DNA of 64,000 nt, taken from contig NW_025766966.1 of assembly GCF_003918875.1 (NCBI RefSeq), positions 62,001-126,000 of the forward strand. The letters are read 5' to 3'. The translations under genes were made by a program, and so were the position numbers. Shown here in pieces: positions 30,411 to 62,862 of this stretch; position 1 is the first letter of the stretch; the number at the start of each line of letters is the position of its first letter. This stretch comes from Haliotis rubra (taxonomy: Eukaryota). The notes beneath the pieces are model-generated. The model was not told the DNA's origin. It worked only from the letters and a program-made list of their open reading frames with translations, and searched no databases.

Positions 30411-31155
30411 ATGTCCAACACAACAGATGGTTCTTCAATCATCCTTTTCTGGACATTTAATGACCGTGAAATAACACTTGTGACGTTTATTGTCAACATC
30501 GTCATATTCATTATCGGGTTTTTGGCCTTGTCATTGAACGCTATCGTACTGGACACTTTAGTGAAGAGAGGGAATCTGGAACCAACGGATCTTGTGATGT
30601 GCCACCTTGCCGTCACCGACATGCTCACCGGTGTCCTCATCATCCACACTGTCGGATACAACATCATCTACTTTCAAAACGACCTCGAATGCCTCATTCG
30701 CATAGGAGCAGTATTCATTTTTATCTCAGGATCTGTTTACCATCTGGCCCTCCTGACAGTGGATAGGTTCGTGAAGATTGTCTTCCCCTACCGTTACCAG
30801 GATGTCATGACCAGGAAGTCCGTGTCCATCATGTCGGCGGCCATCTGGGTGTTCTCCGTCAACCTCGGCCTCCTTCCTTCCTATGGCTGGAGATACTATC
30901 CGCCGCCATCAGAACCACCTTGTTCCTTTCTTGGTGTTTTGCACACAGGGTTTCTTCGGTTTGGACTTGTGGTGTTTCTTCTTCCGGTTTTTGTAATTGC
31001 CATTCTGTATTCGAAGATCTTCTTGGTAGCCAGACGACACGCACGTGCTATTGCCGCCACGGACGTTGCTGGTAAGAACGATTCCAGCAGCATGAAATTT
31101 ACAAAGACCGTCGTTATTCTGATCGGAACGTACCTCGTCTCATTTCTGCCAATGG
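30411..31155 (+). CDS. Class A GPCR, coding exon copy 1 (N-terminus to mid-TM6; MECA/adenosine/GPR12-like)
   Basis: N-glycosylation sequon NTT, TM1 N, TM2 HLAVTD, TM3 C...DRF, TM4 W..LP.YGW, TM5 LY.KIF.VARRH, TM6 F.P. Donor G|GTATGT after 31155 (phase 1). Upstream acceptor gactaat..ttttccag at 30278. Confidence 0.9.
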
Positions 31156-33013
31156 GTATGTACCACTTTACCATGTGTAACCTCGTTGTAAGAGTGAGTG
31201 AGGGAGTAAGGTTTAATGCCGCTTTGGGCAGTATTACTTTACGGCGTGCCAGCATGCATATGATGTGAGTGCAAGGTCAGAAATGGCGTAGTCTCACACT
31301 TTTCTCGACCCCATATGGTGCCTGGTATACTTTTGTTTGGGTGTTTGTTGTTTAACGCCGCACTCAACGATATTCAAGCTGTATATCGGCAGTCTGTAAA
31401 TAATCGCGTCTGGACCAGACAATCCATGACAGCATAATCTCTACGCAAGTGAGATATGACGACATGTGTCAACCCCGTCAGCGAGTATGACCGCCCGATC
31501 CCGTTATTCGACTCTAACGACAAGCACGGGATTCTGAAGACCTGATAGGGGGATAAACCTTCAATGGAGGCGAAATCTAGTCCCGTTTATATTGTACTGT
31601 CCTGTTAAGTGATAGAGGTTTACGGTTACATGCTGGTTGTAAAATATATATCTGAAATATTCTAGTTGTTTTACTGTCCTGTGGCGACTGGTTTTAGCTT
31701 AGTTTATATATTAGCAATGTGTGAATTGTGTTAGTCATGGCATGGCTAAAACATGTTGCCGATTTGAGAATAACTCACTCACTCAGGTGTTTCTCACTTT
31801 GGCGAATGCCAAAGAGCATTGGTTTAGGTAGAAACATAATCGGGAATCTAACCCAGTTTGTCATAAGACATGAGCGAGTGCGTAGTCATTTAACGTCACA
31901 TCGGCAATGTCGTAGTCTATATTAATAAGGAAAACATTCAGACTAAAATACCTGTCGACAATGAATAGTAAAAGTAATAGAGTATCACAGATTTTCATAA
32001 GAAAGATATCACTATACAAAACTGTTCTAAGCTAGATTTTGCTAAATATTCCATACTGTTTAAAGGTACTGTTTACACATGAACTGATGTATTGTCAAAC
32101 AAATTCGTAACGTTGAAAAGATTTTTGTCATGAGTTCAATAAATGATGAAACTCAGTGAAAATTGTCGCATTCTTAACAAAACTTTACATCAAAACGCAG
32201 CTGTTCACATGTACGATATTTTGACATGCTTTTCATCAATTTGAAGCATGAGCCTCGTGCAATTCATCTGCAGAAAGTTGCAGTTGGTCCTCACAAATTA
32301 GTGAAGAAGCTTTCAATGGGTAGTATGGATACGGGCTTTAGATCGCCAGATACTGGAAGAGCGCCATACATGGGACCATGGGGACTTAGAGTACCTTTGT
32401 ACGAGATGACTATCGATAGCAATTTTGGCGGGATCATAACAATTTTTAACCAAATGACGAAGTGAAATGTACGTAGAGGTCGTTCATGTCACAAGGAACG
32501 ATTTAGACGGGGGTGCGAGCGCACGGCACGCACTCACACCTTCAATCCCGACTTCAAAATATATAGATATATAGTCTATGACAGGTACATTTTGACAGAA
32601 TAAATTATTTGCTACCAAACAAAATTTGAACACAGTTACTGTATCGCAAACATATTAGTTATAGAAATCGTGCAACAACCACCCTAACCCCTCTCCTCAA
32701 AAGTGCAGTATCCGCCCCTGTGACAAGTTAGTAAGCTATCGAGGGTGGTTCATAGACAAACAAACAATAATCAATTAGCACATAAATGCTTTGTGAAAAT
32801 TAACAAAGCTTTTAATAAGGTTATTAATTTCGTGTTGAAAATTGACTAAATTTACATCTCGATTATCCCTAAGATAACTGTCACAAAATCGTTTGGCATG
32901 CATTGCAGAACGCCGGTCGTACATGTCTGTCGCAAGGACGACTAAAATCGGTGTCAAGGTGTAACTGGCCGATTGTCGTCGTACACCATGTCGTCATTGT
33001 CACGGCTGGAGTA

Positions 33014-33198
33014 CTCGTGAAGGTCCGGGTTAGAATGTATCTTCAGTAACCCATGCTTGTCGTAAGAGGCGACTAACGGGATCGGGTGGTCAGGCTCGCT
33101 GACTTGGTTGACACATGTCATCGGTTCCCAGTCGCACAGATTGATGTCTGATGTTGTTGATGACTGGATTGTCTGGTCCAGACTCGATTATTTACAGA
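33014..33198 (+). mobile_element. SINE family A, 3'-truncated
   Basis: ctcgtgaaggtccgggttagaatg...gactcgattatttacaga. Confidence 0.85.
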
Positions 33199-34029
33199 GT
33201 AGTTCATAGGGCGACTACAGTTGCCATACACCTAGAACTGCACAGTGCCGTGGTAAACAACTCTCGGACACCGAATAGTTAATGAGCACACCCGATGTAA
33301 CGTAACCTGTGGCCGAAGCCGGCTGTTTAGAAGATATACTTCCCATAGAGCTTCGTAATCGCAAGTTAGGGAAAGTGGTATTTGATGTTCAGGAAATACA
33401 GGTAATATTCTATTACACTATACTCAGACAGGACTGACTGTTGTCGATCTGTTGTATAACGCCGCGTTCATCAGGAAATAACCCGATCTGGACAAGACAA
33501 TCCAGTGATTGACATCATGAACAACCAATGGACAATTTAGTGGCATGCAATTAGCCATGGCACAAGCCTGACCAGCTGATCCATGTGTCGCCTGTGGCAA
33601 TCAGCACAGGTTGGTGGCGAGCTAAATTCTCAATAAAGACCAGTATTTAATAATTTTATGTTAAATCTTTTGCAAATATCCACACATCGATCGAGTACGG
33701 TCAGTTCAAATGTGCTCAAGATTTGTTCAAAGTGACAAATCAAATAAATATTATCATCCATTTTTTTAAAAATATCTGCGGATTTCTCGAAGATCTTGTA
33801 CGATATATAATATGTTCATGTTAGTAAAATAGTTCACAGAACAGTAAATTTTACTTCATGCAGTGATGATGGCAGTCTGGTAACCCAGTGGTTACATGTC
33901 AGCCCACGTGCGACACCCGTGTTCGATGTCCTCTCAGTGGATATTGCTTGAAGATTGTTAAAGCATATTCTAACATAGCATTATTTGTGGATCCTGTCTC
34001 AATACCCTGTATCTATACCTATGTTGTAG

Positions 34030-34556
34030 TACAGTGTATACCGGATCTACCTTCAGTTGTTGGCGATCTATAGCCGGATTTTACATTGTATTGTCCAGAA
34101 ATAATTTTCTACCTTTAAAGATATATGCTAGCTAGTTTTAACTCAATCTGTGATAATCTACTGGTTTTACTGTCCTTCGTTGACAGGGTTTTATATGTTA
34201 TATGTATGTATTATAAATTTAGAACTAGTTTTAGTCACGATATGGCTGAAATATTGCCGAGGTGACTTTAAATCTTAACTCACTCACTCACTCAGTGTAT
34301 ACCGTCCCTAGTAGGGTTATATACCTTCAGTTGTTGGCGATATATAGCAACTTTTTTTATGTTGCATTGTCCGAATAGTTAAGATATTTTAGTTTTCACA
34401 CTAGTTTTACAATTATATCTGTGATATACTAGCTATTTTTACTGTCCTTCGCCGACAGGTTTTTATAATGATTTATTATGACATTATAACTTGTTAATAG
34501 TAGCGATATGGCTGAAATATTGCCGATGTGACTTAAATCTCACTCACATTCAGTGT
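34030..34556 (+). repeat. Tandem pair of family C 3' ends
   Basis: Two ~260-bp units, each cagtgtatacc..taccttcagttgttggcga...atatggctgaaatattgccga..tgact.aaatc.cactcac. Confidence 0.75.
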
Positions 34557-35471
34557 ATATCCAGTGTAATTGCAAGTTACTTATGATGAATAGTGCCCAA
34601 TTGTGTTCAACATGCGCGCAACATCAGAATACTATAAAAGTGTGCATATGCATTCTCTTACGTCAATATTCATATTACCTTTATAGCGGGTTTGTATGAT
34701 ACTTCACTGCAGTAAGCATGAGATGAATAGGCTTATACACAATGAAAGGGATATGTGTGTTAGCGATTTTGTACAGGTAATCATCTACAGCCGCGGAAAC
34801 ATTTAATCAGAACAGTCGATCAACCTGGTCTTCTGAAACCACATTTGTCGTCTCGCTATATCAGTTTTCTCGCCCTGGAACGTTAACCTGAAACAGAGTT
34901 TCCTGCCAGTTGCCGACACTAACGCCCAAATGAGAACAGGTTTATGTATATTCGTAGTTTACGGTTGCCCAGCCATATTGTCTGTTCTAGTGTAATTTTG
35001 AATATTTTGTACCAGAAAATAACCCAAATACCAGTGACCCGAGTCTGTACAAATACCATCAAAGTCCCTATTCCATGGGTCAATTAAGCAAGGGTAGCTA
35101 ATGAATAACTTAAAGACATATTTTTTTGCTATGTCATAGGTCGCGTGGTTTGGCAGCCACGTTGGATTTAAGCGGGTAGGAATACATGCTACAAGACACG
35201 CCGCTTAGGGGCCATAGTTGATTTGAGTTTTTGTAATATGAAACTCCCATTGTGGGTGAAGCCCATTTCTGGTGTCCCCCCGCCGTGATATTGCTGGAAT
35301 ATTGCTAAAAACGGCGTAAAACCACACTCACTCACTCCCATTGTGGTCTAATGTCCGTTGCTGATGGTCGAGTTTTGGTGTTGTGTTTTTACGTATAGTC
35401 CTTTACCTGATACTCAGTTGTTTTACTGTTTTAGAGACATAATGTACTATTGTTTATTACTTCCTTGCACT

Positions 35472-35820
35472 GACCGCCTCCGTGGTGTAGTGGTTAGAGC
35501 GTCCACCCGGAGTGCGGAAGGTCGCGGGTCTCGATCGCGTCATACCAAAAGACGTTAAAATATGGTACTTGTTGGTGCCTGCCTGGCGCTCGGCATTAAT
35601 GGGTACAACAAGGACTGGTCGGCTCGGAGTTAGTATAATGTGTCTGAGTGGGGTATTCATGCTTCACTGCGGCATGGTATCTCAGTGGGCTAGCACTATA
35701 AAACCAGTTTCAGTCTGGGCTAGTACAAGCAGCCGCACATACACATACACACGCATGCACGTCGTCATATGAGCGAAATATTCTCAAGCACGACGATAAA
35801 CCAAATTTCACCTCACCACC
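35472..35820 (+). mobile_element. Second tRNA-headed SINE (family D; central domain gtcataccaaaagac..., possibly Meta-SINE-like)
   Basis: tRNA-like head gtggtgtagtggttagagcg, a distinct body, and a tail related to the other families. The superfamily assignment is from memory and unverified. Confidence 0.65.
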
Positions 35821-35824
35821 CCAA

Positions 35825-36180
35825 TAAAGTGCCAATGGGATGCCTCTATCTCAATTTGCGTCAAGATCATCAATACGTTCAGTTCAGTAGTTTTAGCCTG
35901 TTTTTGGAAGCTTGTTTTGAAAGTTTGTAGACCGCCCGTCTAAGCACTCCCTTATCAAAGTTGTCAAGGATGGTTTTACGTCCCGGTTTTGCATTTGAGA
36001 CGGTCCCTGTCTTGTCTGATTTGTTTACAATATTGTAAACTTGTTGGTAAGACATGCCAACAGCTCTACAAGTTCTGTAATAAACCCTTTCTAAACTAAT
36101 GAAAGGTTTACCTCTGTCTTTTTTTTAAGCAGAAAAAAACTATAAACCTTTGCAACAATCGACTGCAAATCGTTGGCCAT
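35825..36180 (-). pseudogene. N-terminal fragment of a second Sailor-like transposase
   Basis: MANDLQSIVAKVYSFF..RGKPF..RTCRAVG..LDNFDKGVLRRAVYKL aligns with the N-terminus of the 14240-15467 transposase (KVYGFF..GKPF..RAAKALG..LDNFQKNLVRQSINKL). Confidence 0.65.
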
Positions 36181-36820
36181 AGTGGACGCTGTGATAAAGA
36201 TGTGCATGCATGACGGGAAACTTATTTATCAAGACTTAACATTTATATTAATATTTCTTCAATAAAGAAAATGATACTTTAGTAAAGTAACACAAACATT
36301 CAACATTTATTTGTTTAGGATAAACGTTAATTCATATTTTTACACCACCTGTATTATTAGCATAAATGTAAAGACTATTTCAGATTTCTGTTGTTGAACT
36401 CTGAAAAAATCTTAAGTTGCTGTTTTGGTACCAAATTCTCTCCTGTAAACTGCCCTTTAAATGCATGGGAATGTTAAATCGATTGAAATAAAAATTTGGT
36501 AGACAATAGGCGAGTTGATATATTGACAACATAGTACATTTATCACCTTTATAAAGATATTAAGGCTAAAAAGCATTTTTCTAGCATTTCCGACAGTACT
36601 TTAGTCACTATATCGCTTAAAAAAAACCGTGTGTAAAAATATCGAAAGAAGCGTTAGTATAATATGAAATTCGATGCCGTTACATCGACGATGGGACAAT
36701 GTGCAATCTTGACTTAGAAGTATTCTGTAGAGGTATACGTTGCTGTTGTAGTTATTGCTGTTTTATAATCCTTTATTATCCCCGCAACAACCTACAACGA
36801 TAACGCAATTCGTCATTATA

Positions 36821-37898
36821 CGAGGGGAGGTCCAACAGTTTTGAGAAACAGCTATGCCGCTAGTAGTATTGCATACATTGATCATTCATGAGATACATGT
36901 GAAAGTGCCAACACCTCGTAACAAACAGTATTAATAATATGATAACTGGAAGAGAGATACCCTCCTGATATCGTGGAGAATTCCAAAACTGAGTACAGAG
37001 CTGTAGTTCATGTCCTCACACTAGAGGGCGCCAACACAAGCAGAATCCACGAGTAGTCCTGACCTGGCACCCAGTCATTATAACCTGTTTTGAAATTTGA
37101 AGTCTCACTTATAGGCCTACCAAAGAAAAATTTCCCACTGTTTAGAAAAAAGCAGAAATGTCCACATTAATCGTGGAAATAGCAACATAAACATAAACAT
37201 AATACCTCGCTACTGAAACAATAAAAACGGGAACTTTAAATCGCTAAAACTGGATCAAAAAGCGAAAAGCCTGCAACTTAGATTTTGCGCAGGCGCGCCT
37301 GGAAGAGGAAGTTTCGACCTCATGTTGACATTTTTCAGTTTGAACAAAAGTTACATTCCCTTTTCAAAGTATTCCTGTGGTGTTATTTGGCATTTATAAT
37401 CATCCTACTTATGTGCACACTTGTTTGGTTTACCTTCCATTCGTGGCGATTCACGGTTGCTCGGAAATCTGAAAGAAGCGCGGATCGTAATGCGCATGCG
37501 CGGTAGAGGTCAAAGTTCGCTGATATAAAAATGTTGCAGTTTCATAGTCTTTCGTTGCCGTTTTTACTGCTTCAGTAGCGAGGTAATATGTTTATGTTGC
37601 TATTTCCGCGATTAATGTGGACATTTCTGCGTTTTCTGCACAGTGGGAACGTTTTCTTAGGCAGGCCTGACTTGCGTGGAAGACGATTTGCCAATGATGA
37701 ACTCAAGGCTACAAGAGAAGCTTGGTATAGTGATCAGTCAAAAGACTTCTATTTCCAGGACATTGCCAGCTTGCAGCACAAATGGTGTATTGAAAGTGTA
37801 TTGAACTGAAGGGAGACTATAGTGAAAAATAGAAGTTCGAAACCCGCTCTGACTGTTAATTGTACATCAAGTTATCAAAACCTTTTGACCTCCCCTCG
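36821..37898 (+). mobile_element. Internally deleted mariner element
   Basis: TA-flanked TIRs cgaggggaggtccaacagttttga / tcaaaaccttttgacctcccctcg. Motifs EYRAV..L.LEG, SPDLAPS.Y.LF, LRGRRF, C(I)ELKGDY.EK*. Confidence 0.88.
37112..37669. mobile_element. MITE with long imperfect TIRs nested in the mariner (YAG termini, possibly Academ-mobilised)
   Basis: taggcctaccaaagaaaaatttcccactg / cagtgggaacgttttcttaggcaggcctg; short actt duplication; interrupts the mariner frame at LK.HL|RGRRF. Confidence 0.75.
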
Positions 37899-37914
37899 TA
37901 ATTATTGAAACAGT

Positions 37915-39590
37915 TTACATTCTTATATATTGGGGATAACAATCAGATGACCATCGACCAAAGCGCTTCATGGTCTCTGCATCAACCTCGTTCATAGCCG
38001 CCGTAGTAGCAGCCCCAATTCTGAAAGAGTGAGATGTGAATTTAAGATGCCCCACGTCAAGATGACTGATGACTTTCTGCAGCAGTGCCTGAAACTGAAA
38101 TCTGGTTAGTTTTGCCATCAAAGTGTAGGAAAAGATATGGGGAAGCAGCTGGTTGCGATGATAAATAGGTTTCCATGGCAGTGACTGGACATAGCGGATA
38201 ATATGGAACAGCTTTGATGTGGATAGAAGTGCCTTTACCTGTTTGAGAAGTCTTAGAATACTCGAGTGTGACATGCATGGCCGCCGCGTTACCTGTAGTA
38301 ATCTTTACATCATGAATAGTGAGAGACCTACGTGACGTGTCAGAAAGGGGGGTAGGTACCAACTCACTTATCCTGGAGAAACAAAATTAAAGCCAGTGTG
38401 TATGCTGCTTTAAAAAGATTGCATTCATAAACAGAAGAACAAACAATATGAAGGACTTTCGAAATTGATAATAATATTTCTGCTGTGATCAGGCCTTGAC
38501 TGTCCGGAGAGCGTCGTCCGCACTAGGAAATGTTGGGATGCATCCTGCATGTCGTGCCACTTGTGCCAGGTCCCCAGTGCTGCGATGTAGGCGTTTGCCG
38601 TTCTAGACGTTTTACCCTGCAAAGACAATGCTGACAAGTAATATATGATATGATCACGCGGTGCCAGCCATGTAGATGGGAGACAACGTGACACTCTCGT
38701 TGAAAGACTGTAACGTTGTAATGATAGGTCCTCCAGCTGTCCCAGATGTCCGGGTGCTGTCCCAGATGTCCGGGTAGTGGTGTTGCTCTTGAGTCTGCTA
38801 GTGGTGCTGCTTCCCGGAAACGATCCCACTGAATGCTCGAAATAGCATCAGCTATAACATCATGAGCAGATATGTACCTGGAAAGGAAAATACTATTATG
38901 ATTAAGACATGAAGTTACTAGCAAATACACAAGAGACATCACCTTGGGGTTCTTGGATGTTTGCCTGTTGATGATGGACACGACAGCTTGGTTGTCACAC
39001 ACAAACATTACCTTGTTGTTAAGAAACTTGGGTGCCTACAAACGTAGTGCTACGATGACAGGAAACAAATCAAGGAAAGTCATGGCTTTCATGAGCCCGC
39101 TATGACCCATTTGCCTGGCCATTTACCATATGCCCAACTCCCATGGAAGTATACCCCGAACCCGCATGAACTGACAGCGTCTGTGAAAAGCTCTGTTTGG
39201 GTTGACGTGAGCCACTCTTCATTCTGAAACACAGATGAACCATTGTGGTTGAAGAGAAATGTTTGCCAGACTTTAAGATCTTCTTTCACTCCCCTGGTAA
39301 TCCTGACGCGATGATACGGTTTTACCTGACCCTTGATTGCGTGATACAGGTGCTACCCGCTAGGGTAGCACGTGTAATGAACTGGAGTCTCCCCACCAAT
39401 GATTGCACCTCCACAACCTGTATTTTCCTTCTGCTGGACGTGAGGATTGCTTGTATCTGCCTGGTGACCTCTGGTATCTTCTCCGCCGGTATTGTCACCT
39501 CCATAGCTACAGTGTCGGTCGTCAAGTCCAAAAATGTGATTGTGGTGGACGGTCCGACAGTTTTGTCATTTGCAGTCGGTAGAAAGTTTA
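37915..39590 (-). mobile_element. DIRS/Ngaro tyrosine-recombinase retrotransposon relic (RT end, RNase H, YR)
   Basis: GPT..ITFL, LFTDA...GFG.YF.G.W, CDNQAVV.IIN..TSK, SKT.Q.G.G, HSFRIGAATTAA..GRW.S..Y..YIR. Confidence 0.88.
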
Positions 39591-39805
39591 AGTAATTCAG
39601 AACATGTGTTTGTATAGGGATAGCCCGAACGCTGAACTGGCCGTACCTGGCCGTGCCCTACAACAAGCCCAAAAATACGACTTGTGCCTTTCCAAATTCA
39701 CACTTTGCAAGATTCACAGTAATATTTGCTTCAGACAGTCTTTCGAAGAAAGTGCGGATTCCCTTCAGATGGTCTTCCCAGTCCATGTCGTAACTGATGT
39801 TATAA

Positions 39806-43121: not shown

Positions 43122-43136
43122 ATCCCGGATGAGCCC
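43122..43136 (-). promoter_or_regulatory. tRNA-Pro primer binding site remnant
   Basis: Minus strand gggctcatccgggat versus canonical PBS-Pro TGGGGGCTCGTCCGGGAT, just upstream of gag. Confidence 0.6.
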
Positions 43137-43192
43137 TTAATTTTTTTTTGGACGATTTAGAAATTAAGGCTTGTGAGCCCCCCTTAAAGGAG

Positions 43193-43350
43193 NNNNNNNN
43201 NNNNNNNNNNNNNNNNNNNNNNNNNNNNNNNNNNNNNNNNNNNNNNNNNNNNNNNNNNNNNNNNNNNNNNNNNNNNNNNNNNNNNNNNNNNNNNNNNNNN
43301 NNNNNNNNNNNNNNNNNNNNNNNNNNNNNNNNNNNNNNNNNNNNNNNNNN
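43193..43350. other. Assembly gap (N run)
   Basis: Run of n. Confidence 1.
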
Positions 43351-44480: not shown

Positions 44481-47400
44481 ATGCACTCATACCAAACACA
44501 CCCCCACCCCCACCCCCACCCCCACCATATAGTAATACAGGCATTATTTGACTATAAAAAATGTACAAGCAACTGTGAAGGAAATATGTTTATTCATACG
44601 AAAGATTGCATTACTATCTTTGATGGTGATGAGAACAGAACACCAAGGTAGCTATAATAGGTTACAGTTTTAACATCTTGACCATCTGATGTCAACATCG
44701 GTAGACTCGGAAACACAGACTGGTAAGTTCGTCATGTAAACAACTGTCGAATAATCGGTTTTATCGGTTCAGTTATATTGTTAATGCACCAGATCATTTT
44801 AGATGATTTCAATATACTTTAATATATTTCTTAAATGTGACTGTGTTGTGTGCATCCCGATGCCAACTGGTCTTGAAAGTAAGTGTTGTACTACTGTAGC
44901 GCTTGGTCTTTGGCCACATGGCGGCACATTTGACGTCACGAGCGGAAAGGTCACGTGAGTTCCAGCGGAATATGCATGATGGCCGAAGCTGAGATAACAG
45001 AAACTGTTTTCGCGATTAAAACATAAATATACATATTTTTGAATTGAAAATTTCGGTATATGCTTCTGATGACTTTATCCTTCACCGAGCTAATTATTGC
45101 AATTCGCTCGTATTCTCCTTTAAACCAGTAAAATACAACACATACGAGTCTATAATGTTCGATTGTATAATGAATAAACACGGTTACAATGAATGACAGT
45201 ACAGATTTCTAATACTATACTATTGGATCAAAAATCTAAAATATTATCTCACCAAAGTATTGATATTCGCAGTAAAAACAGATAAACTGATTGAAGATTG
45301 TTGACAGATTTTGAAAGTTCAATGTGGACGAGGTCTTGAAACGTTCATGTTAGCAGACAGATCAGCATAATCCAAAGTAGTAGTCCCCTCATACATCTCA
45401 GCAACCGTCCCTTATATACATATTATACAGTTCTAGATATTTCTTGCAAAAGCTATGCCACACCACCACCATTTAGAAATTACTGGAATCCCACTGTCTT
45501 GCACCGGAAGCAAAACAACCGAGGTAACACTAACTCCCCAGCTTACTCTTAACAGGCGTAATTACATAGGCTTAGTTCAAGGTATGAGTTCAAATCCTAA
45601 CTCAGCTCTTTAATCTTCTGTGACCGATAACAACTGAAAGTTAATTAATGTGACATTATAATTAACAAAAACACATCCCCATAACATTATTTACACGCTT
45701 TTTAAAACATAATCTGTAGTCGTGTTAGTACGTATTATTTTAGTGACAGTGAGGAAACTTTGATTCTGATTTGTCAAATTCAGATTAGACTGGAATTTGT
45801 ACATAACTTTTGACATAATAGTTCGTATGAAAACATCTATCAGTCGATAGCCGAGGCATATTTAACGATGGATGCAGAAAACCCATTGGAATTGTACGTT
45901 AGATGTCAGACCAATAGTTTAGCAAACTATTGTCTATTTCAGAACACACATAATGAAGTAAAACAGGAATTAACCTCTGTGTTTGTGTAACACAATCATA
46001 GGCCACAAAGCTCAGCAATCACTTATACTTATGGAATTGTACTTTAGATGTAGGACCAGTAGCTTATCAAACATGATGAAATCTATTTCAGAACATACAC
46101 AATAAAGTAAAACTTGAATTAACCACCGTGTTTGCGTCACAAAGTTCAACAGTCTCTTATACTTTCTCCGTTAACGTACCGAGTAGTCTTCAAGTAAAAT
46201 TTATGTATTCAACCATTGTCTGGAGGAGTTTCATTCCTAAGGTGGTGCCACAACACTCGTTTCCGCCTCTAGATCACAACAGGGTTGTCCTCTATGTTCA
46301 TAAAATTTGTGACTAAATTGTCTCCGTGTACAACTATTCTGGAAGCTGTAGAATAATGGGAGAAGATCAAATCAGCTATGTGTAAAGTCATGTTGAGAGA
46401 GTCAATATGTAATACTGTTTTGGAGGAATTATCTCAAACTAAACTGTACGTAAGTGATATAACTTCTAAATAACTAAAATAATGTGATATATTAAGTATT
46501 TTGATAAATCAGGCCAATGTTTTGACATATTCTGTAACCTGTTACTCCTGCAAATAAGGTGTTGCACACCACAAACCTTGAACCCCGCATTGGAACCCAC
46601 AGCCATAGGTCTCTAACATGCCCAAGGGAAACATTTCTGCAGGGCGAGTTGCGGCGCCCTTGGCGATCTTGTCTTTAACCAACACTAAAATCACAGTAAT
46701 ACAGGTAATGAGAGATTCTTATGTTTCCTCCTCCTCTTTAGGTGCCCAATCATCAGTGCCTTCTTCAACAGAAGAAGAAAAACAGCCATTTGAAACCTTT
46801 CATTAGCTCTCCTTAATGCAATGGTCAAGTTCTTGTGAAAGGACATACTGACAATTTGATGAATTGGGCGGGCACAGTGCTTTCAACGATCGTTTTCCCC
46901 GTGTTAATCAATACACAGATTCATCACGAGGTAGGCACTTAGTTCTGGAGAACTGAACCAACTGAAACTGTTGCGTTGACAGTTCTGGAAAGGTTAAGGA
47001 GAACGGGCCTTCAGATTGACAAAAGCCCATGGCTTGTGCAAGTTTATTAGTTTGATTAACCTTCATGTGGGTAATGTAACTATTTAAATGCCTATATTCA
47101 CAACTGATATAACTAAAGATGGTCCTCTTATTTAAATCTCACAATTTCGAATTTCGATGGGTTTATTCTAAAATGGTTTATGTTTAAAACTCATACACGA
47201 ACAATGCTCTTGAACCAAACGCGAAACCCAATATTACCTCACTTAACATACAATAGTAACCCTATTAGGTCCAACAATGCCATAAGGGCTGTTAGTGCAG
47301 AAACTAGAAACACTAGAATGATGATTTCTATTGACAACTACATATAACTAACGATCTAAGTGCTCTATTGGTTTGACAGGCAGATGGCCACGAATGTCCG

Positions 47401-47606
47401 AGTGCGGATCTTTAATCACATTAGTACATTACTACTAATGACTTCACAACACACAATGAATAATCTCTTTCCAGGAAGTCGGTGCAAGTTGATAGGCTAT
47501 TTTCTTCTGTGTTTTTGTCCGACATCACTGTAAAGATACATGGACGGTGGGTTCATAAGGTCAAAACATTCATTCTGTTGAGAGGCAGAGAGACGGAGGT
47601 TTCACC

Positions 47607-48351
47607 ATGTCCAACACAACAGATGGATCTTCATTCATCCTTTTCTCAACATTTAATGATAAGAAAATAACACTTGTGACGTTTATTGTCAACATCATCA
47701 TATTCATTATCGGGTTCTTGGCCTTGTCATTGAACGCTATCGTACTGGACACTCTGGTGAAGAGAGGGAATCTGGAACCGACGGATCTTGTGATGTGCCA
47801 CCTTGCCGTCACCGACATGCTCACCGGGGTCCTTACAATCCACTCTGTCGTATACAACATCATCTACTTTCAAAACGACCTCGAATGCCTCATTCGCATT
47901 GGAGCAGTATTCATTTTTCTCTCAGGATCTGTCTACCACCTGGCCCTCCTGACAGTGGATAGGTTCGTGAAGATTGTCTTCCCCTACCGTTACCAGGATG
48001 TCATGACCAGGAAGTCCGTGTCCATCATGTCGGCGGCCATCTGGTTCTTCTCCGTCAACCTCGGCCTCCTTCCTTCCTATGGCTGGAGAGACTACCCGCC
48101 GCCATCAGAACCACTTTGTTCCTTTCTTGGTGTTTTGCACACAGGGTTTCTTCGGTTCGCTCTTGTGGTGTTTCTTCTTCCGGTTTTTGTAATCGCCATT
48201 CTGTATTCGAAGATCTTCTTGGTAGCCAGACGACACGCACGTGCTATTGCCGCCACGGACGTTGCTATTAGGAACGATTCCAGCAGCATGAAATTTACAA
48301 AGACCGTCGTTATTCTGATCGGAATATACCTCGTCTCATTTCTGCCAATGG
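47607..48351 (+). CDS. Class A GPCR, coding exon copy 2 (N-terminus to mid-TM6)
   Basis: Intact, indel-free paralog of copy 1. Donor G|GTATGT after 48351 (phase 1). Upstream acceptor ttttccag at 47474. Confidence 0.9.
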
Positions 48352-48867
48352 GTATGTACCACTTCACCATGTGTAACCTCGTTGTAAGAGTGAGTGAGGG
48401 AGTAATGTTTAATGCCGCTTTGGACAGTATTACTTTACGGCGTGCCAGCATGGTGTGAGTGCAAGGTCATAAGTGTCGTAGGTCTGAGACGATCTTCGAC
48501 CCCATAGTCCTTAGTATGTTCTGTTTGTGTTGTTGTTTCTCGTTTTGTTGTTGTTATGTTTTGTTTGTTGTTGAACACCGCTCAGCAATATTCCAGCCTT
48601 GTGGTGGCGGTCTGTAAATATACGAGTTTGGACCAGACAATCCAGTCATCAACAGCATGAGCATCGATCTACACAATTGGGATATGATGATATGCGTCAA
48701 CCAAGTCAGCAAGCATGACCATCTGGTCTATAGCCCGTTGGTATTTTATAGTCCTGAACAGTGTTAAAGCCTTTTAGAGTTACATGTTAGTTGTAAAATG
48801 TATATCTGTAACATTCTAGTTGTTGTATTGTCATTTGGTGACTGGTATAAGCTTACTTTATATATAA

Positions 48868-49002
48868 CCCGTGAGATCCGGGTTAGAATTGACCTTCATT
48901 AAGCCGTGCTTGTCGTAAGAGGCGCTTACCGGGAGCGGGTGGTCAGGCTCGATGACTTGGTTGACTCATGTCATCGTATCTCAATTGCGTAGATCGAGGC
49001 TC
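48868..49002 (+). mobile_element. SINE family A with internal deletion, specific to duplication unit 2
   Basis: cccgtgagatccgggttagaattgaccttc...; TSD-like cttacttta(t/c)atat; absent at ~31700. Confidence 0.75.
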
Positions 49003-49739
49003 ACTTACTTTACATATTGCCAATGTATGAATTGTTTTAGTCACAGTATAGCCGATGTGATTATAACTCAACTCACTCACTCACTCAGTCCTGAAGGCGT
49101 TTCTCACTTTCTCACAGAGCATGGGTTTGGTGCTTACTCGAACCCAGTTGGTCTTAAGTGAGTGAGTGAGTTGATATTTAACGTCACATCGGCAATATCT
49201 CAACGAGAACAATGTATATGTTGATAAAGAATACATTCAGACTACAAATACCTATCGACAATGGACAGTAAAATAAATGGAATAGCACAGATTTTGACTT
49301 TAAAAAGCATTTTAGCACAAAAAGACATCACTATACAAAATCGACTCAATATGAATACGTGTTACAGATGGCCAGACACTGGAAGATCGCCATACCATGG
49401 ACAAAGGGATATACAGTAACTTTGTTAACGTAAGAGATGACTATCGATAGCAAATTTGGCGGAATCATAACCATTGTTAACCAAATAACGAAGTGAAATA
49501 TACGTTTATGTCACAAATGACGATTTAGAGGGGGGGGGGGGGGGTGTTTGCACGCACACACTCACACCTCCAACTTCTACTTCCGCCTCTAAATTATTAC
49601 ATAAATATTTTAATCAATGACCGGTAGATTTGGACAGAATACATTATTTGCCACCAAACAATATGTCAGCACAGTTACTGTGTCGCACACATACTAGTTA
49701 TAGAAATCGTGCAACACCCGCGCAACCACTCACTCACTC

Positions 49740-50330
49740 AAAATTGCTATATCGACCCCTGATGGGGACACATGATATGTTACGAGACGCCCAAGCCAAT
49801 CTATATAGCAAACCATGCTTCGGTTCATTTAAACCTTGTACAATCCTGGCAAAGAAGCGCAAGGTGCTTTCAGTTAATTCCAGGTCTTTACCATGGCGAG
49901 TTGGTAGTAGTTCATAAAAACTCGTTGTTAAGATCGTTCTTTTCCATATCTTAATACTTGCATACTGCAAATCCCTACTGTTTAGACCAATAAAGAGGAG
50001 GGAATTAACAGTGCGCCTTGCTTTAGTACAGCTCTCCTCAATATATAGTTTAAAAGGAAGATTACTTTGGAGAACAATACCCCCGTACTTTACACTATCA
50101 GAAAGGGTTAGGCCATAATGCCCAGAGTGATAAGCATGCGTATGCATTAGATGCTTCTTTTTATGAAACACCACAATGTTACTTGTTGATGCATTACAGG
50201 TTAATCGCCATTTGGATGCGTAATCAATGACTGTGTCTTAAGCTAGCTGTAGACCTTTAGGACTGTATTAACTAATAAGTGTAGTATCATCAGCAAGTAA
50301 TACACATGGCAATCTAACGTTTCATCGATA
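49740..50330 (-). mobile_element. CR1/L2-group LINE RT fragment
   Basis: LLADDTTLIS.SPKGLQ, YASKWRL..NA, KYGGIV, KARR. Confidence 0.7.
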
Positions 50331-52299: not shown

Positions 52300-53260
52300 C
52301 ACAAGTAGGATGCAATTCAGAAGTCACTTCTGGGCATAGACGGTGTGAGGTGCTCGTGTCAAGATTACGAGACTTCTTAAGGTACATGTAGCTGTTTTGA
52401 TGTGTACAGATCATACTGAGAAAACAACATGTGAAATGTTGGTCATCTTAATGGATAACGTCTACGCAAAATTTAGGGGTAAAACTTTCAGACAAGAAAT
52501 AGGCACCATTAAGCTCCCTTCCTTCCTGATCGGTTTCTCTATGCATATAGGTCGGAATTTCTCAGGCTGGCAAATCAAAACCATGTTACTTGGCCAACAA
52601 GATTAGCTTCAGGTGTATCGAGGACCTGTTATCCCATACTCAATTCTTCCTTCATGTCGAGCAATGTTCCAACAGCTCCAGCCTTTGAACCCGTGAAGGT
52701 CCGGGTTAGAATGAACCTTCAGTAACCCATGCTTGTCGTAAGAGGCGACTAACGTGATCGGGTGGTCAGGCTCACTGGCTTGGTTGACACATGTCATTGA
52801 CTCCCAGTTGCGCAGATTGAGGCTCATGCTGTTGATCACTGGATTGTCTGGTCCAGACTAGATTATTTACAGACTGCCGCAATATAGCTGGAATATTGCT
52901 GAGCGTGTCGTTAAACTAAACTCACTCACTCCAGCCTTTGATGTTACATTTCACAGCGTTTGAGATACAATAGAGCAGGGATCTTTTTTTTAATAATTTG
53001 AAGAGATCTATAATACTTTAGCTCAGAAGTTGCTCGATCAAGGTTACAACATTCAAGGCCCCAGTAAGGCTTTAAAAGGTTTTATGGTAGACACGTGAAA
53101 GACATTTCCAAATATGACGCATCAGTAGCACACATTATACAATTCCCCACATGGAGTTGTTCAATACGTTCGCGTGTAAGGTAAGCAATTGATTTGCTTT
53201 TCACGGCGGGTGCAACCGGTTGGGTTGAATGCGCTTACCTTATCGGGAACACCTGTATCA
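52300..53260 (+). mobile_element. Penelope-like retroelement RT relic interrupted by SINE A
   Basis: L.DNVY..F.GK.FRQ.IG; KLL.QGY; FYGRH; 3' acggcgggtg...gcttacc..aacacctg motif. Confidence 0.55.
52690..52928 (+). mobile_element. SINE family A, full length
   Basis: 13-bp TSD ctccagcctttga (52676-88, 52929-41). Confidence 0.92.
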
Positions 53261-53646: not shown

Positions 53647-53801
53647 GGGGGTAGCCTAGTGTTTGAAGCGTTCGCTCGTCACGCCGAAGACCCGGTTCCG
53701 ATTCCTCACATGGGTACTATGTGAGAAGCCCATTTCTGGTGCCCCCGCTGTGATATTGCTGAAATAGTGCTAAAAGCGGCGTAAAACTAAACTCACTCAC
53801 T
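53647..53801 (+). mobile_element. tRNA-derived SINE family B
   Basis: gggggtagcctagtgtttgaagcgttcgctcgtcacgccgaagacccggttccgattcc...gcggcgtaaaactaaactcactcac. Confidence 0.85.
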
Positions 53802-54064
53802 TCCATTCACCTTCAAAAATTCAATATATCAACACTATTTCGAAAGAAACATCATCCATATACATTTCCTTGTCCATCACGCAGGAAAGACTGTCCAAAG
53901 TGGTTTTGTTGTTTGTTCCCAGCTTACAGACACCTGTAAAGGTTTCCGTCATACATCATTTTATTTCAAACTAGTCTCCACTCAGTGGATCACTGAAAGT
54001 AACTTGAAAAAGCCATGTGATGCTTAATTAAATGAATACAAATTAAGTCGACTTTATACATCTC

Positions 54065-54308
54065 CCCGTGAAGATCCGGGTTAGAATTGATTTTCAGTAA
54101 CCCATGCTTGTCGTAAGAGGCGACTAACGGGATCGGGTGGTCAGGCTCGCTGACTTGGTTGACACATGTCATCGGTTCCCAATTGCGTAGATCGAGGCTC
54201 ATGCTGTTGATCACTGGATTGTCTGGTCCAGACTCGATTATTTACAGACCTCCGCCATATAGCTGGAATATTGCTGAGTGCGACGTAAAACTAAACTCAC
54301 TCACTCAC
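54065..54308 (+). mobile_element. SINE family A, full length
   Basis: Full consensus from cccgtg to the (actc)n tail. Confidence 0.9.
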
Positions 54309-56299: not shown

Positions 56300-57044
56300 A
56301 TGATGGCTGATGCAAATATTACGTCAGGAGTCTTGTTTATGACACTCCACGGCAAGGAGATCACAATGGTTAGTCTTGGCATAAACATAGTTATATTCTT
56401 AGTGGGATTCCTTTCCCTATCTCTGAATGCAATTATTGTGGACAGTTTGGTGAAGAGAACTGCTCTGGAGGCCACGGATCTGGTGATGTGCCATCTTGCC
56501 GTCACCGACATGCTCACAGGGGTCCTTGTCATTCACACAGTTGGGTACAACATCATCAATTTTCAGAGTGCTACAGAATGTCTGATTCGTCTTGGCGTCG
56601 TATTCACCTTCGTGTGTTGCTCTGTCTATCATCTGGCCCTCCTGACAGTGGATAGGTTCGTGAAGATTGTCTTCCCCTACCGTTACCAGGATGTCATCAC
56701 CCGGAAGTCCGTGTCCATCATGTCGGCTGTCATTTGGGTCTTCTCCGTCAACCTCGGTCTCATCCCGGCCTACGGCTGGAGGGATACACCAGCACCTTCA
56801 GAACCTGCATGTTCTCTGCTTGGAGTCTTAACGGCAGGATACATACAGATGGGACTGTTTTTCAACTTCTTACCACTTGTCGTAATTTGCGTCCTGTACA
56901 TGAAGATATTTCTGGTCGCCAGGAGACATTCCCGCGCGATCGCAGCTACTGACGTCACAGGGAACAAGAACTCTGGGAGCATGAAGTTCACCAAAACAGT
57001 GGTTATCCTGATTGGAGCTTACATCGTCTCGTTTTCACCTCTAG
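56300..57044 (+). CDS. Class A GPCR, coding exon copy 3 (divergent paralog; N-terminus to mid-TM6)
   Basis: Same motifs and the same ATG-to-donor length (745 nt). Donor G|GTAAGA after 57044 (phase 1). Upstream acceptor atgttcag at 56188. Confidence 0.9.
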
Positions 57045-59019
57045 GTAAGACAAGTGGTTTTCACCCATATTCATAGCTTCCCTACTTTAGATGTCTGAAA
57101 ATGGATCAACCACCAAGACTAAATTCAGTTCGACAAAACTTAACTTGATTGAGATTTGAACATTTAAATAGTATGTTATGTTTACATGACCATCGTCTGA
57201 ACCTACATCATCTCGTATTAGCTCTTAGTAATGAGACCTCGACCCACAGATACAGCAGTACAACATCATGAATGTTCTGATATACTGTATTATTCGTATG
57301 TGTCAAGCCTGGCCAATAGATCAACAGACACAGGATCTATGTTCAAAGGCATATTTACAGTGTAGTCCTGAGGATATTCCGTTGTCAAATATTCAAGCTT
57401 CGTGTCAAAAGTGAATAAGTAAGAGTAAAACTTGACGTCGACCAGCACTGAAAGGAAAAGGGTTATATGATGTGCAGTAGAAGTTATTTCAGTTATTCTT
57501 TCGATAGAAGATACCACTAAAGCATTGAAACTGGTAACACATCCGCTCTTTGTCATATGAACATTTTCAACGTATAGGTTGCTGTAGTTAGTATCATGGG
57601 TTTTTTTTAAATCTTACGGATGCTGATTGAAACAACCGCTATAGGACCTTAGTTTCACGATTTAACGACAAGATATGCATGTATGGACAAGATCTGCACG
57701 AGGTACTTAAAACTGTGCTTTGGATATATCGTATGAAAATCATTGCTCAGAAATTCTGAGCACAATATCATTTGCTTATATGAATCACAGCCACTGAACA
57801 CTGAACTCTCAACGACGTCGTTTTGGTGATGACCAAAGAGTTAGACATATACGTAAGCAACTTGTTCACAACATTATGAACAAGCAAATTGTATACATGA
57901 AGGATTTTTGAGTTTATACAATTGACGAGGTTCATGTACAGTACGTTGAGTAGATTGGAATTGGGTCACCACAACGTCACTGTGCAGACGTCTTCGATGT
58001 CAGCCAATATGTGTGATCAAAAGGGCATGGAGTCAGTAACAGACCTTTGGATCAGCTACCTGGTGACATGTGGGTGTAGACACCGTTTCACCACACAGCA
58101 GGGAGACGTCATCACTTCCTGTCTGACGAACCCTTAGACTTTTCAAATGACTTTTGTTCATTAAACATGTCTTCACGCAATACTGTTATTGGCTATTTAA
58201 CAGATGCGCATAATTTGACATACTACCTTTGTGATCCTTAACAAACTTTGAATAGTGTACATCTCGATTGGGCGAAAAGGGGCTCTTATGTACGAAGTTC
58301 ATTGTCATCCTGAACGTGATGTGTAATCGTGACCGCCTAACTGATCAATTCCCACATGTTTCCTGGGCCGTTGAGGGAGTCCATCGTAAAACTTTACGTT
58401 ACCGATGTTTATCAGGGTTTTTTTCGAATTAGTGAATCGGGTGGTTAGGCTCGTGACGGGTTTTACATCCAAAACAAGTAGTATGGATCACTGATCAGAG
58501 ATCAGGTTATTGTGAAACCATACCTACTCTTACTGCACAACAAACCAGGGAACGCGTGTAAAAAAATCTAACTATTTCACCGGCGAGATGGAAGATAGTG
58601 TGTTTACCGTCGGAGTAATGAACGTTTTGCCCCTAATTGCATTCGACAGGTCGACAGATTCAGTGGAGAATGTGTCATGGCGGTGCGGTATCCAGCCAGA
58701 GGCGTAGCTACCATTATAAAAAAAAGCCCGGGCTTACACGTGATTTTGAAAGTGAAAGTTTGGCAAGCCCTCAATACTAACTAAATATAAGATTTGAAAC
58801 CTATCGGGCTTACACGAAGAAATTGGCTTGCTACGCGCCTGCCAGCACACAAAGATCTGATTAAGTGGTGGTTCAGGGGAATTTGACAGCAAATCTGTAC
58901 ATCAACGAAGTCCTTGGACGTCTAATGCTTCCGATTATGGGGTATCCTCCCATTTGTCACACAGCTAATCCCCTGCCTGTTACCTCTTAATGAAATTGGA
59001 ATGGCCCATAAAATAAATA

Positions 59020-59880
59020 ACAGAACAGAACAGAACGTTATTACACTCAGGCCGATATCATCGGCAGATCGGCATATAAGGTACAAATGACAATAAATGA
59101 TAATATTATGGTAGTAGTATAATGGTAGTTAGCCGGAAAATTTTACAATTTGCATGATATATTTACAGAATGCTCTGAGATTTTCATAACAGATACCTTT
59201 TACAAGTAAAGAGTGATTTAAATTTTAACATATTTAGAGAATATGTTTGACCCTTTTTGGAATTTTCAATCTCTGGGCTCCAGATTTGAATTGAATGAGC
59301 TGTATTTTTTATCCAGGGAGATTAAATAGGAGACTGTGAAAGCCATACATAACCAATGTTATTAAAAATATTCTCTGTACATGAAATCCAGCTACAGTTG
59401 TGAATACCTTCATTATGAAGATTATATACAATAGAGCAAAATATTAAAACTGTTTGTAAATAATTTAGACCAAGAAGTTAACATAAGAGTTTTAACATCA
59501 AAAGATACTGGGACTCTACCAAATTCACCATAAAGCATATACAACCGGGTCCTTTTCTTTAATACTTTTCTCATATAACATATATGTAATTTTCAATTTG
59601 TTTTGATTTAACATATCCCCAAATTTCACAACGATACAACAAAATTGGTTTCACCATTGAATCAAAGAGATATAGTTGACATTGTATTGATAAGTTTAAC
59701 ATACGACAAAATACATGGCTTTAGAAGCTTGTTGACAAAGATTTGATATAGATAATCTGAAAGAACATTTTCTATCAAAAATAACTCCAAAATATTTGTA
59801 CACAATATCAGTTTTCCTTAGGTTCAACTAACTGGTTGAAATATCCAGTTGGGACATTCCCATTTATATTTGGGTGTTGC
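59020..59880 (-). mobile_element. Decayed CR1/L2-group LINE 3' fragment
   Basis: (TTCTG)n-type tail, YGE(F)GR.P motif, and YxxEIWG-like remnants on the minus strand. Confidence 0.55.
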
Positions 59881-59959
59881 CCTAATTAATCTCTAGTCCA
59901 GTGTCTGACAATTGGGATGTCTAACTAATGATAGTAAACCGATTAGGGACCGACAGAGG

Positions 59960-60440
59960 GAGTTGTTAGAGCATGACAACGCTACTTCACGGTCCGCTAC
60001 CTTGCCAACGAATTCTAACGTCAATGTCTTGCCATGGCCTTGCCGATCATCAGATCTAAACCCGATAGAACACATATGGGATGAACTCGATCGACGTGTA
60101 CGTCAACGTCAAAACTTCCAAAAGTGACCATCGCATTGCAGGAAGAGTGGGGAAGAATTTCGCAAGATCGACTTCCTCGACTTATCCAGTCTGCCGAGAC
60201 GGTGCCGAGAAGCAATTGCTGACAATGGTGGCCATACAAAGTACTGACTTTGACGCCATCTTGTGGACTCAAGTAAACAGAAACACAGATAAAAACTGTT
60301 GTTGTGTTGGCGAACTCTTTGTCTATAGACGTGTAAATTTTCACCATTTTGCCATTAAAATTACATGAAATAATTGCTCTTAAACTAGCGCAATATATTC
60401 TTCTAAAATGTCTTATGCGTTCCTTTTTTTTGAAGAGTGT
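59960..60440 (+). mobile_element. Tc1 catalytic-end fragment
   Basis: HDNA..., VLPWP..S.DLNPIEHIWDELDRRVR, GGHTKY*. Confidence 0.8.
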
Positions 60441-60700
60441 ATGTCATCGATATGCTTGATGTTCATCGTTTGGCCGAAGTACCTTTTTGATGATGTCAAA
60501 TTCGTATGCATAAAGAAACAGATCATCAAGGGGGAGAGTTAGTGCCCATTGGGAAGTCATTATGTCACAGTCATCTGCTTATGTGGTGTGTACTGTTGGG
60601 TGTGTTAGAATTATGTATTTTCAATGCAATATATTTGAAGAATAAGATTATCCTCGTGCCACCTCATGACTGACGTCCATAAAAATAACACGTTGATATA

Positions 60701-61794
60701 TACTAGGCAGTAAAAGAAACGTCAGTTTGGAATTTTCCTTCGCAAAAACGGATTACTGTAAACTCATTTAATGTTTTGATTGTATATTTTTGATAACATC
60801 TCCAACTTTACCTGAGCAAAGACATTCCTTCCCAAACTCAGAATGGAACCCAGAAAATGGTCTCAAAAACGCAACCTGATCTCGGAGATGGTACGGTGTT
60901 CTCCATGTGTTTCATGCAACTCATGCTGCACGTGCTGTTCACAAGGACCAACCCTATAAAATGCACCCCCAAACCAGGTTGAAACATTCACATTACAACG
61001 TCAGCAGGATGCCGCGACTCACGACAGCTCAGAAGAACCAGGCGCTAGGAAGACTTGAAGCTGGCCACACCGCACAAGCCGTTGCCAATCACTTCCAGGT
61101 CAACGTTTGGACCAACTACAGGCTGCAGCAACGTTTCCGGGTCACCAACACCACAAATAATCGCCCCGTACTGGCAGACCAAAGGTGACCACAAGACGAA
61201 AAGACCGCCATGTTGTGCGACAGCATGTACAGAATCCCTTCATGCAGGCATCCGAAACAGCACGCCAGACAGTGGGAACACACGGAAGACCAATCAGTAC
61301 TGATACAGTACGCCGACGTCTTAACAGCGGGAACCTCCATTCCCGTAGACCTTAGCGTGGACCTATCCTCACCCCTCGACATCGGCGTGAACGTCTAGAG
61401 TTTGCCCTGCAACACCAAAACTGGTGATAAAGGCAATACAGAACTGTTCTGTTCACAGATGAGAGTCGGTACTGCGTATCAACTGCAGATGGCAGAACAA
61501 GAATATGGCGACGACGTGGCCAGCGTTACTCAGACCAATCTCTTCTGGAAAGAGACTCATGGGGAGGTGCAAGCATCATGGTATGGGGTGGAATAGGCCT
61601 GAACCAGAGAGTGGGTCCTGTGGTGTTGCAGAACCTTGGTCCAGGGAGAGGAGGCGGCATCACAGCGGTGCGCTACATCGACCAAGCTCTCAGACCCCAC
61701 GTCATACCACATTTCGCGCGTCACCGGAACAGTCTACAGTTATCCGTTTCTGCGAAGGAAAATTCCAAACTGACGTTTCTTTTGCTGCTTAGTA
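60701..61794 (+). mobile_element. Internally deleted Tc1 element with intact ~58-bp TIRs
   Basis: tactaggcagtaaaagaaacgtcagtttggaattttccttcgca / tgcgaaggaaaattccaaactgacgtttcttttgctgcttagta. Motifs MPRLT..Q.NQALGRL, LFTDESR, MVWGGIG; truncated before the second Asp. Confidence 0.88.
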
Positions 61795-62312
61795 TATATT
61801 GGAAATAGTTACTTATGTTCTTGCGTGTGGATGGCATATGGTTACTTGTTTTTAATACAAATATTTAATATTCTAGTTATTTTACTATCCTTTCTTGGCA
61901 GATATTTATATCGTTTAAGTTTATTTAGTTAATATTGCTTTCATAGTCATAAAATGTCATAATATTGTCGATATTAACTCACTCACACACTTTATTGGAA
62001 ATATTTAAGGAATGCACATTAAAATCAATCTTCAGTTATCAATATTATTTTGTTTTCTATTTGTGACCGGTTTGAAGCACATGGGCCTAAAATGAGAAAG
62101 TCTGATCATATCGTTTACGATTTAAATAAGCAACCGTATCACCGGTATTCATCACCGTCAATCTCAACGTTTGATGCTGTTGCAGATACAACCGGAACAT
62201 CTCGTAGCATGTGGTTTTCCTCTTTACGGAAGTATAATGTCAAAAATAACAGTTTTGTATTTAGAGTAAACACATAAACTGCTTTCTCTGACAGCATGGT
62301 GTTTTAAACTTT

Positions 62313-62620
62313 GAATACTACAGATGATTCTGTTGCAGCTCTTAGTGATGGCATTTTTGTTCTAACATTGGAATACTACAGATGATTCTGTTGCAGCTCT
62401 TAGTGATGGCATTTTTGTTCTAACATTGGAATACTACAGATGATTCTGTTGCAGTTCTGACTAATGGCATTTTTTTTAACGTTTTAATACTACAAATGGT
62501 TCTGTTGCAGCTCTGAGAGTATTTTTGTTCTAACGTTGGAATACTACAGATGATTCTGTTGCAGCTCTGATTGATGACATTTTTATCTGGAATACTACAG
62601 ATGATTATTATTTGTTGCAG
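62313..62620 (+). repeat. ~54-58 bp tandem repeat x6 built from the 3' splice site of the terminal GPCR exon
   Basis: Unit gaatactacagatgattctgttgcag-ctcttagtgatggcatttttgttctaacattg; tgttgcag ends at 62338, 62396, 62454, 62510, 62564, 62620. Confidence 0.9.
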
Positions 62621-62862
62621 CTATGATAGCCTTGGTGTACACGTTTGGAGGATTTCACGAAATGTCTGCAACAGATGTTGGTGACTACATCGTTTACGCC
62701 AGCGTCCTGACGTTCGCAAACTCCCTCGTCAACCCCATCATCTACGCTTTCAAGTTGCCGCCAGTCAGGAGGAGACTACTCCGCTTTCTTGGCAAGAGCA
62801 ACAACTCTTCAAATCCAACCACTAGTGGAACCGTACAGACAATTGCCACCGATATGGATTAA
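62621..62862 (+). CDS. Class A GPCR terminal exon (end of TM6, ECL3, TM7 NSLVNPIIY, helix 8, C-tail)
   Basis: Acceptor tttgttgcag|CT is phase-compatible with all three donors (G+CT=Ala). NPxxY motif, Ser/Thr-rich tail, stop TAA. Confidence 0.92.

Follow-up and report, generated by a model that had tools for sequence, protein, structure and literature searches.

Insect Grs and Ors belong to a seven-transmembrane (7TM) superfamily separate from the G protein-coupled receptors (GPCRs) of class A, and class A GPCR repertoires are thought to expand by whole-gene duplication, usually of intronless or otherwise simple genes. At the Drosophila Gr39a, Gr28b and Gr23a loci, large alternative exons encode six transmembrane (TM) helices and carry a 5′ splice donor; the seventh helix and the C-terminus come from small shared exons (PMC2204066). 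Exon duplication at Gr39a-type loci yields new isoforms, signs of gene conversion are present, and the ratio of nonsynonymous (dN) to synonymous (dS) substitution is below 1 in all of the large exons (PMC2204066). Tandem paralogous first coding exons that are joined to common downstream exons are also described for the clustered protocadherins (Pcdh) and UGT1A in two reports (PMC1885805, PMC3325998). Literature searches returned no account of such an arrangement in a class A GPCR or in abalone. Here, we analyzed a receptor locus in a 64-kb stretch of the genome of the abalone Haliotis rubra (contig NW_025766966.1, positions 62,001 to 126,000; hereafter, the window). The locus contains three large variable exons (V1, V2 and V3) and a single downstream constant exon (C). 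V1, V2 and V3 are each probably spliced to the shared C exon, which would generate three 328-residue receptors from one locus.

The closest known system is the Drosophila Gr39a/Gr28b/Gr23a type of locus, along with Or46a and Or69a. Like these loci, the abalone locus pairs six-helix large exons with a shared seventh-helix exon. The two arrangements differ in the number of small constant exons, with three in Gr39a and one in abalone. Furthermore, isoform expression has been demonstrated for Gr39a, whereas for the abalone locus it is predicted. The Pcdh and UGT1A clusters are cut between domains, and each of their variable exons has a demonstrated promoter. In contrast, the abalone locus is divided within a helix of a single compact 7TM bundle and has only three variable exons. 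Ordinary two-exon abalone paralogues (four from H. asinina and one from H. cracherodii) display 60-80% identity to the locus, contain the same phase-1 intron after the TM6 proline and reside in the same chromosomal cluster. Unlike the locus, these paralogues each possess their own TM7 exon 1-11 kb downstream, with a single acceptor and without the 58-bp minisatellite that adjoins the C exon.

The V1 (30411-31155), V2 (47607-48351) and V3 (56300-57044) exons are located on the forward strand. Each exon extends over 745 nt from an ATG to a phase-1 GT donor and covers the N-terminus to the middle of TM6 with a stop-free translation of 248 codons plus one base. Translation and donor inspection thus agree with the original prediction, which had described three intact exons of exactly this length and donor phase. 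The exons are tandem paralogues, each with its own ATG and all with one common donor phase. The donors fit the consensus, with the sequence ATGG|GTATGT in V1 and V2 and CTAG|GTAAGA in V3. The V3 start codon may instead be the second ATG at position 56303, which would match the other species. Each V exon matches the Pfam family PF00001 (7tm_1) at 93-95 bits (94.6 bits for V1; cut-off, 30.5), and the match spans TM1 to profile position 218 of 260. The DRF sequence, an E/DRY-type motif at the end of TM3, is found in all of the V exons. V2 is a younger duplicate of V1. V3, which lies nearest to the C exon and groups with the ordinary two-exon paralogues, is 70% identical to V1 and V2 and 91% identical to H. 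asinina XP_067666910.1, a V3+C model.

The C exon (62621-62862, forward strand) encodes the second half of TM6, TM7 with an NPIIY motif, helix 8 (H8) and the C-terminal tail and terminates with a TAA stop codon. The exon is preceded by ttgcag and is read in phase 1 as A-MIALVYTFGG...NPIIY...DMD-stop, comprising 80 codons including a split alanine codon. The C exon is in frame with all three V exons, and each V+C product would be 328 residues long. A tblastn search with the TM7 exon as a query (E ≤ 10) identified no second TM7 exon in the 64-kb window, and an nhmmer profile derived from six of the family's TM7 exons detected no TM7 copy or relic elsewhere in the 64 kb. The profile was sensitive enough to recover paralogous exons with a protein identity of only 42-47% (E < 1e-14). 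The previous observation of only one TM7/NPxxY exon, in frame with all V exons, is therefore retained. The single constant exon lies downstream, and none is located between the V exons, with the caveat of an N gap at 43193-43350.

The locus encodes a class A (rhodopsin-family) GPCR, as indicated by the 7tm_1 match, the DRF and NPIIY motifs and a seven-helix bundle with H8. In an AlphaFold (AF2) model of V2+C that was built with a 32-sequence alignment (pLDDT, 84.8; pTM, 0.82), seven helices are followed by H8, and TM6 (residues 225-256) is continuous across the exon junction at residues 248/249. The best Foldseek matches of the model in the Protein Data Bank (PDB) are the A2A, A2B, CB1/2, beta-1 and S1P1 receptors with TM-scores of 0.7-0.84 and sequence identities of 22-25%. 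A phmmer search against PDB sequences returned the alpha-1A adrenergic, S1P1, beta-1, GPR6/12, 5-HT1A and A2A receptors at near-equal significance (E values of 1e-21 to 1e-18). No receptor type stands out by sequence, and the NCBI name 'adenosine receptor A3-like' appears to be only a best-hit label. Relatives with 35-41% identity are found in Gigantopelta, Littorina, Lottia, a chiton and Mytilus. The V1-V3 products vary most in the N-terminus, TM1, TM3 and TM5 and are nearly alike in TM2, intracellular loop 2 (ICL2) and TM4. In the V1-V3 comparison, the least identical regions are the N-terminus (36%), TM5 (62%) and TM1 (65%), and the most identical are TM2 (93%), ICL2 (90%) and TM4 (88%). 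This pattern fits receptors that differ in their ligand pockets and share a signalling face.

The H. rubra locus was compared with its orthologous, N-free counterparts in H. asinina, H. rufescens and H. cracherodii. In H. asinina, V1 is followed by V2 21 kb on and by V3 a further 15.5 kb on, with one C exon 3.5 kb past V3. A convergent paralogue with its own TM7 exon is located on the opposite strand ∼5 kb beyond the H. asinina C exon. H. rufescens and H. cracherodii each carry one V1-type exon and, ∼9 kb on, one V3-type exon, followed by one C exon and then by the next paralogue. No second V1-type exon was detected within 10 kb upstream of V1 in these two species, although a further V1-type copy may lie beyond this distance. 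No extra TM7 exon or relic was found between the V exons in the H. asinina, H. rufescens and H. cracherodii loci, with 100 bp of the H. asinina V1-V2 interval, between the two fetched loci, lying outside the search. Thus, the layout of several V exons and one C exon is shared by all four species including H. rubra. The GT donor and phase 1 are kept in all ten V exons examined, eight of which were read directly; the two H. cracherodii exons were inferred from the NCBI V1-to-C model and a tblastn end-point. Moreover, the V exons and the ordinary two-exon paralogues share the codon position of this intron. Elsewhere in the H. rufescens locus (35221-35970 and beyond), the XP_046354768.2 (258 residues) and XP_048236894.1 (248 residues) models have an identical V-derived part and different TM7 exons. 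They may represent the converse case, in which one V exon is paired with two C exons, or a gene that was duplicated very recently.

The V exons are under purifying selection. Substitution was estimated by the Nei-Gojobori method with bootstrap confidence intervals (CIs). Between H. rubra and H. asinina, dN/dS is 0.047 for V1 (dN, 0.012; dS, 0.245; CI, 0.01-0.10), 0.21 for V2 (dN, 0.041; dS, 0.193; CI, 0.11-0.37), 0.21 for V3 (dN, 0.045; dS, 0.212; CI, 0.11-0.35) and 0.28 for C (dN, 0.054; dS, 0.19). In comparisons with H. rufescens, dN/dS is 0.06-0.17, with values of 0.06-0.14 for the V1/V2-type exons at a dS of 0.5-0.65. The exon flanks are 75-82% identical between species, and dS (0.19-0.65) is similar to the intron divergence, which indicates that dS is approximately neutral and that dN is suppressed. 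All of the ratios are well below 1, and the first two copies do not evolve neutrally; neutral evolution had been named in the original prediction as a potential objection. The low dN/dS values and the gapless exons amid diverged flanks indicate that V1 and V2 are protein-coding and have remained coding with no TM7 exon belonging to either.

V1 and V2 are embedded in duplicated blocks that were delineated by self-blastn at 29186-32720 and 46369-49761, respectively, both on the forward strand. The V1 block, homologous to the V2 block, lacks a TM7 exon, and V2 was accordingly born without one in a 3.5-kb duplication. The V1 and V2 exons are 94.9% identical with no gaps, whereas their flanks (1.2 kb upstream and 0.35 kb downstream) are 83-85% identical and carry 14 and 7 indel events, respectively (21 in total). 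The V1-V2 alignment therefore reproduces the earlier observation of stop- and indel-free exons within indel-rich flanks. H. rubra V2 clusters with H. asinina V2 in the exon tree (support, 94/99) and in the tree of the 1-kb upstream flank (100/99), which places the V1-to-V2 duplication before the split of the two species and indicates that V2 has been retained ever since. In the local tree, the V1/V2 lineage is set apart from V3 and the ordinary paralogues by the longest of the inner branches, and the V1-type lineage goes back to the deepest split among the local family members. Because V3 groups with the two-exon genes, the C exon is most simply interpreted as the original partner of V3. The V1-V2 dS within H. 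rubra is 0.11, compared with 0.19-0.25 between orthologues and a flank divergence of ∼0.17, which suggests some degree of gene conversion between V1 and V2 that is limited to the exon.

The possibility that V1 and V2 are two haplotypes assembled in tandem was rejected. Their flanks differ by ∼16% with many indels, and the same order is found in H. asinina, where H. rubra V2 has its own orthologue and pairs with it. The assembly gap in the V1-V2 interval (43193-43350) is of estimated length only and falls in non-coding sequence; no exon borders it, and hence no reading frame is affected. The surrounding 41.6-46.1 kb stretch has no detectable H. asinina counterpart by collinearity comparison.

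NCBI gene models already annotate the layout in part, as models in three species join V1/V2-type exons to C. The H. rubra model XP_046574248.1 (328 residues) is exactly V2+C; its residues 1-248 are identical to V2, and it places the intact, conserved V3 exon inside an intron. In H. rufescens, XP_046354647.2 and XP_048256064.1 are isoforms X1 (V1-type) and X2 (V3-type, 5′-truncated) of one gene and have the same 80-residue C-terminus. The H. cracherodii model XP_071094491.1 joins the V1-type exon to C. These automatic Gnomon models indicate that a gene caller accepts the V-C junctions as plausible and do not demonstrate their expression. Clusters of the relevant proteins consist of NCBI models only. 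Many family members of ∼250-290 residues that end at the same residue were also retrieved from a 1.84-billion-protein search; these are open reading frame calls on short genomic contigs and were discarded as evidence of orphan exons.

The proposed expression of the locus would proceed through the choice of one V exon per mRNA. The phase-1 donor of the chosen V exon would join the single acceptor at 62621, and any V exons between this donor and C would be removed as intron. The three resulting receptors would have an exchangeable region from TM1 to the middle of TM6 and a common TM7 and tail. The choice could be made through a separate promoter for each V exon or through mutually exclusive splicing from a shared 5′ exon. 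The start codons of V1 and V2 are preceded at a distance of ∼130 nt, and that of V3 at ∼77 nt, by acceptor-like AGs that follow modest pyrimidine tracts. The original prediction had stated that each copy keeps an upstream acceptor; such sites do exist, but they are weak and not uniformly conserved. Joining the V1 donor to the acceptor-like sites before V2 or V3 was discarded as a productive route, since a stop follows after 3-25 codons.

The first ∼50-60 nt of the V1 and V2 introns (31156-31215 and 48352-48411, forward strand; alignment of three species) are far better conserved than the remaining intron, and nothing similar follows V3. This stretch may act in the control of splicing. It contains two additional, stronger-looking donor motifs, GTAAGA and GTGAGT, 32 and 38 nt into the V1/V2 intron. 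They were rejected as the real donors because they would be in phase 0 and lead to a stop at the start of C. On the acceptor side, a 58-bp minisatellite (62313-62620, forward strand, with the TRF call reaching 62626) of ∼5 units runs into the true C acceptor, and each unit copies a region with a branch-point-like TTCTAAC and a TTGCAG acceptor. The array abuts C in all four species, with ∼5 copies in H. rubra, 4 in H. asinina (positions 14034-14267 of the fetched locus), 40 in H. rufescens (23617-25956) and 31 in H. cracherodii (22447-24257). The TM7 exons of four one-V paralogues, each with a single acceptor, are not preceded by it. Splicing to a decoy unit of the array would lead to a rapid stop. 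It is conceivable, albeit rather unlikely, that the V exons are chosen cell by cell and that the array functions as a landing pad or a set of decoy acceptors that tunes long-range splicing.

Several observations weigh against the splicing of all three V exons to C. The H. asinina models that contain V1 and V2 (XP_067667623.1 and XP_067667624.1; stubs of 281 and 282 residues) read through the donor without splicing, and only V3 is joined to C. H. rubra V1 is modelled with an unrelated exon at 39252-39595 (forward strand) in place of C. In this model, XP_046574247.1, the first 248 residues are identical to V1, and the tail maps with 100% identity to window positions 39254-39592 by tblastn; the exon follows a weak acceptor (ttgaag|AG), and its reading frame is poorly conserved, with a 51% identical counterpart in H. 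asinina. An H. rubra protein that matches V3 is absent among the protein-search matches. The Gnomon models disagree between species and may rest on protein homology alone. A search of the protein collection with V2+C residues 190-328 found no RNA-derived protein across the V-C junction and returned only another NCBI model. A donor further upstream could be captured by the acceptor-like AGs that precede V2 and V3, which would lead to truncated products, and the large exons of Gr39a differ from the abalone V exons in lacking an acceptor. Finally, the V1-V2 interval of H. rubra contains the unread gap at 43193-43350.

Despite these points, splicing to C best explains V1 and V2, given that both exons are strongly constrained, that a product ending in half of TM6 without NPxxY would be no receptor and that C is the only compatible exon. 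The retention of the layout in four abalone species likewise makes splicing to a shared last exon the likeliest reading. V1 and V2 could instead be separate genes for stand-alone truncated proteins that span TM1 to the middle of TM6 plus a short tail and serve, for example, as modulators or partners of full receptors. The two H. asinina stub models are exactly such products, the read-through frame is open for 33-37 codons after V1 and V2 in both H. rubra and H. asinina, the ∼50 nt past the donor are conserved, and purifying selection would suit any coding role. However, a 10-nt insertion shifts the frame in H. rufescens, where the tail is short and unrelated, and the read-through tail was therefore rejected as conserved coding sequence. 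Moreover, such a protein would end in the middle of TM6 just past the conserved proline and would lack NPxxY. The GT donor and its phase have been retained throughout, and selection on the first half of TM6 (TM6a) is as strong as elsewhere. A truncated-protein role for V1 and V2 is thus unlikely.

Even less probable is an arrangement in which only V3+C functions and V1 and V2 are the orphaned first exons of dead genes, left intact by chance or conversion. V1 and V2 do lack a TM7 exon of their own, and their low dS in H. rubra (0.11, below the orthologue dS of 0.19-0.25) hints at conversion. Chance preservation is difficult to reconcile with a dN/dS of 0.05-0.2 over a dS of up to 0.65 and with the complete lack of stops and indels in seven V1/V2-type exons from four species. 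V1 and V2 could convert only each other, given that V3 is just 70% identical, so conversion would import no constraint, and the V1-type lineage dates back to the deepest split of the local family. The least probable explanation is that V1 and V2 use an unseen TM7 exon that resides in the gap, lies beyond the window or is too diverged to be recognized. The estimated length of the gap leaves room for this scenario, and the convergent paralogue ∼5 kb past C in H. asinina offers a nearby TM7 exon. That paralogue is nonetheless on the opposite strand, the N-free loci of the other three species show no such exon, and TM7 exons of 42-47% identity were still found at E < 1e-14. Overall, the original proposal that one gene gives three receptors with a common TM7 is supported in part by comparative anatomy, selection, donor phase and the V2+C fold, but the locus is not unannotated, given the NCBI models in three species.

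Other elements are interspersed in the window. An ∼250-bp repeat family, the copies of which are 87-93% identical, occurs on both strands, including the V1-V2 and V2-V3 intervals. Copies are located at 20627-20877, 21617-21861, 25388-25636, 26092-26305, 33013-33198, 52689-52931 and 54065-54308, and weaker copies are found at 31350-31540 and 1709-1962. Upstream of the receptor locus, a 385-residue open frame on the reverse strand (14240-15397) contains a DDE_3 transposase domain (E value of 4e-9) and is predicted to be a DNA-transposon remnant or copy. A second assembly gap (10873-11036) lies outside the receptor locus.

Gene callers handle this architecture inconsistently: the V exons are called as read-through stubs in H. 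asinina, joined to a junk exon in H. rubra and assigned to isoforms in H. rufescens. Accordingly, mollusc receptor counts and 'truncated GPCR' calls may be wrong wherever the TM6 intron of this family occurs. The minisatellite at the C acceptor provides a testable handle on long-range 3′ splice-site choice. If the three V exons are indeed joined to C, a 7TM bundle can be split inside TM6 and yet evolve modularly, and the solution of Gr39a and Gr28b would have been reinvented independently in an unrelated receptor superfamily.

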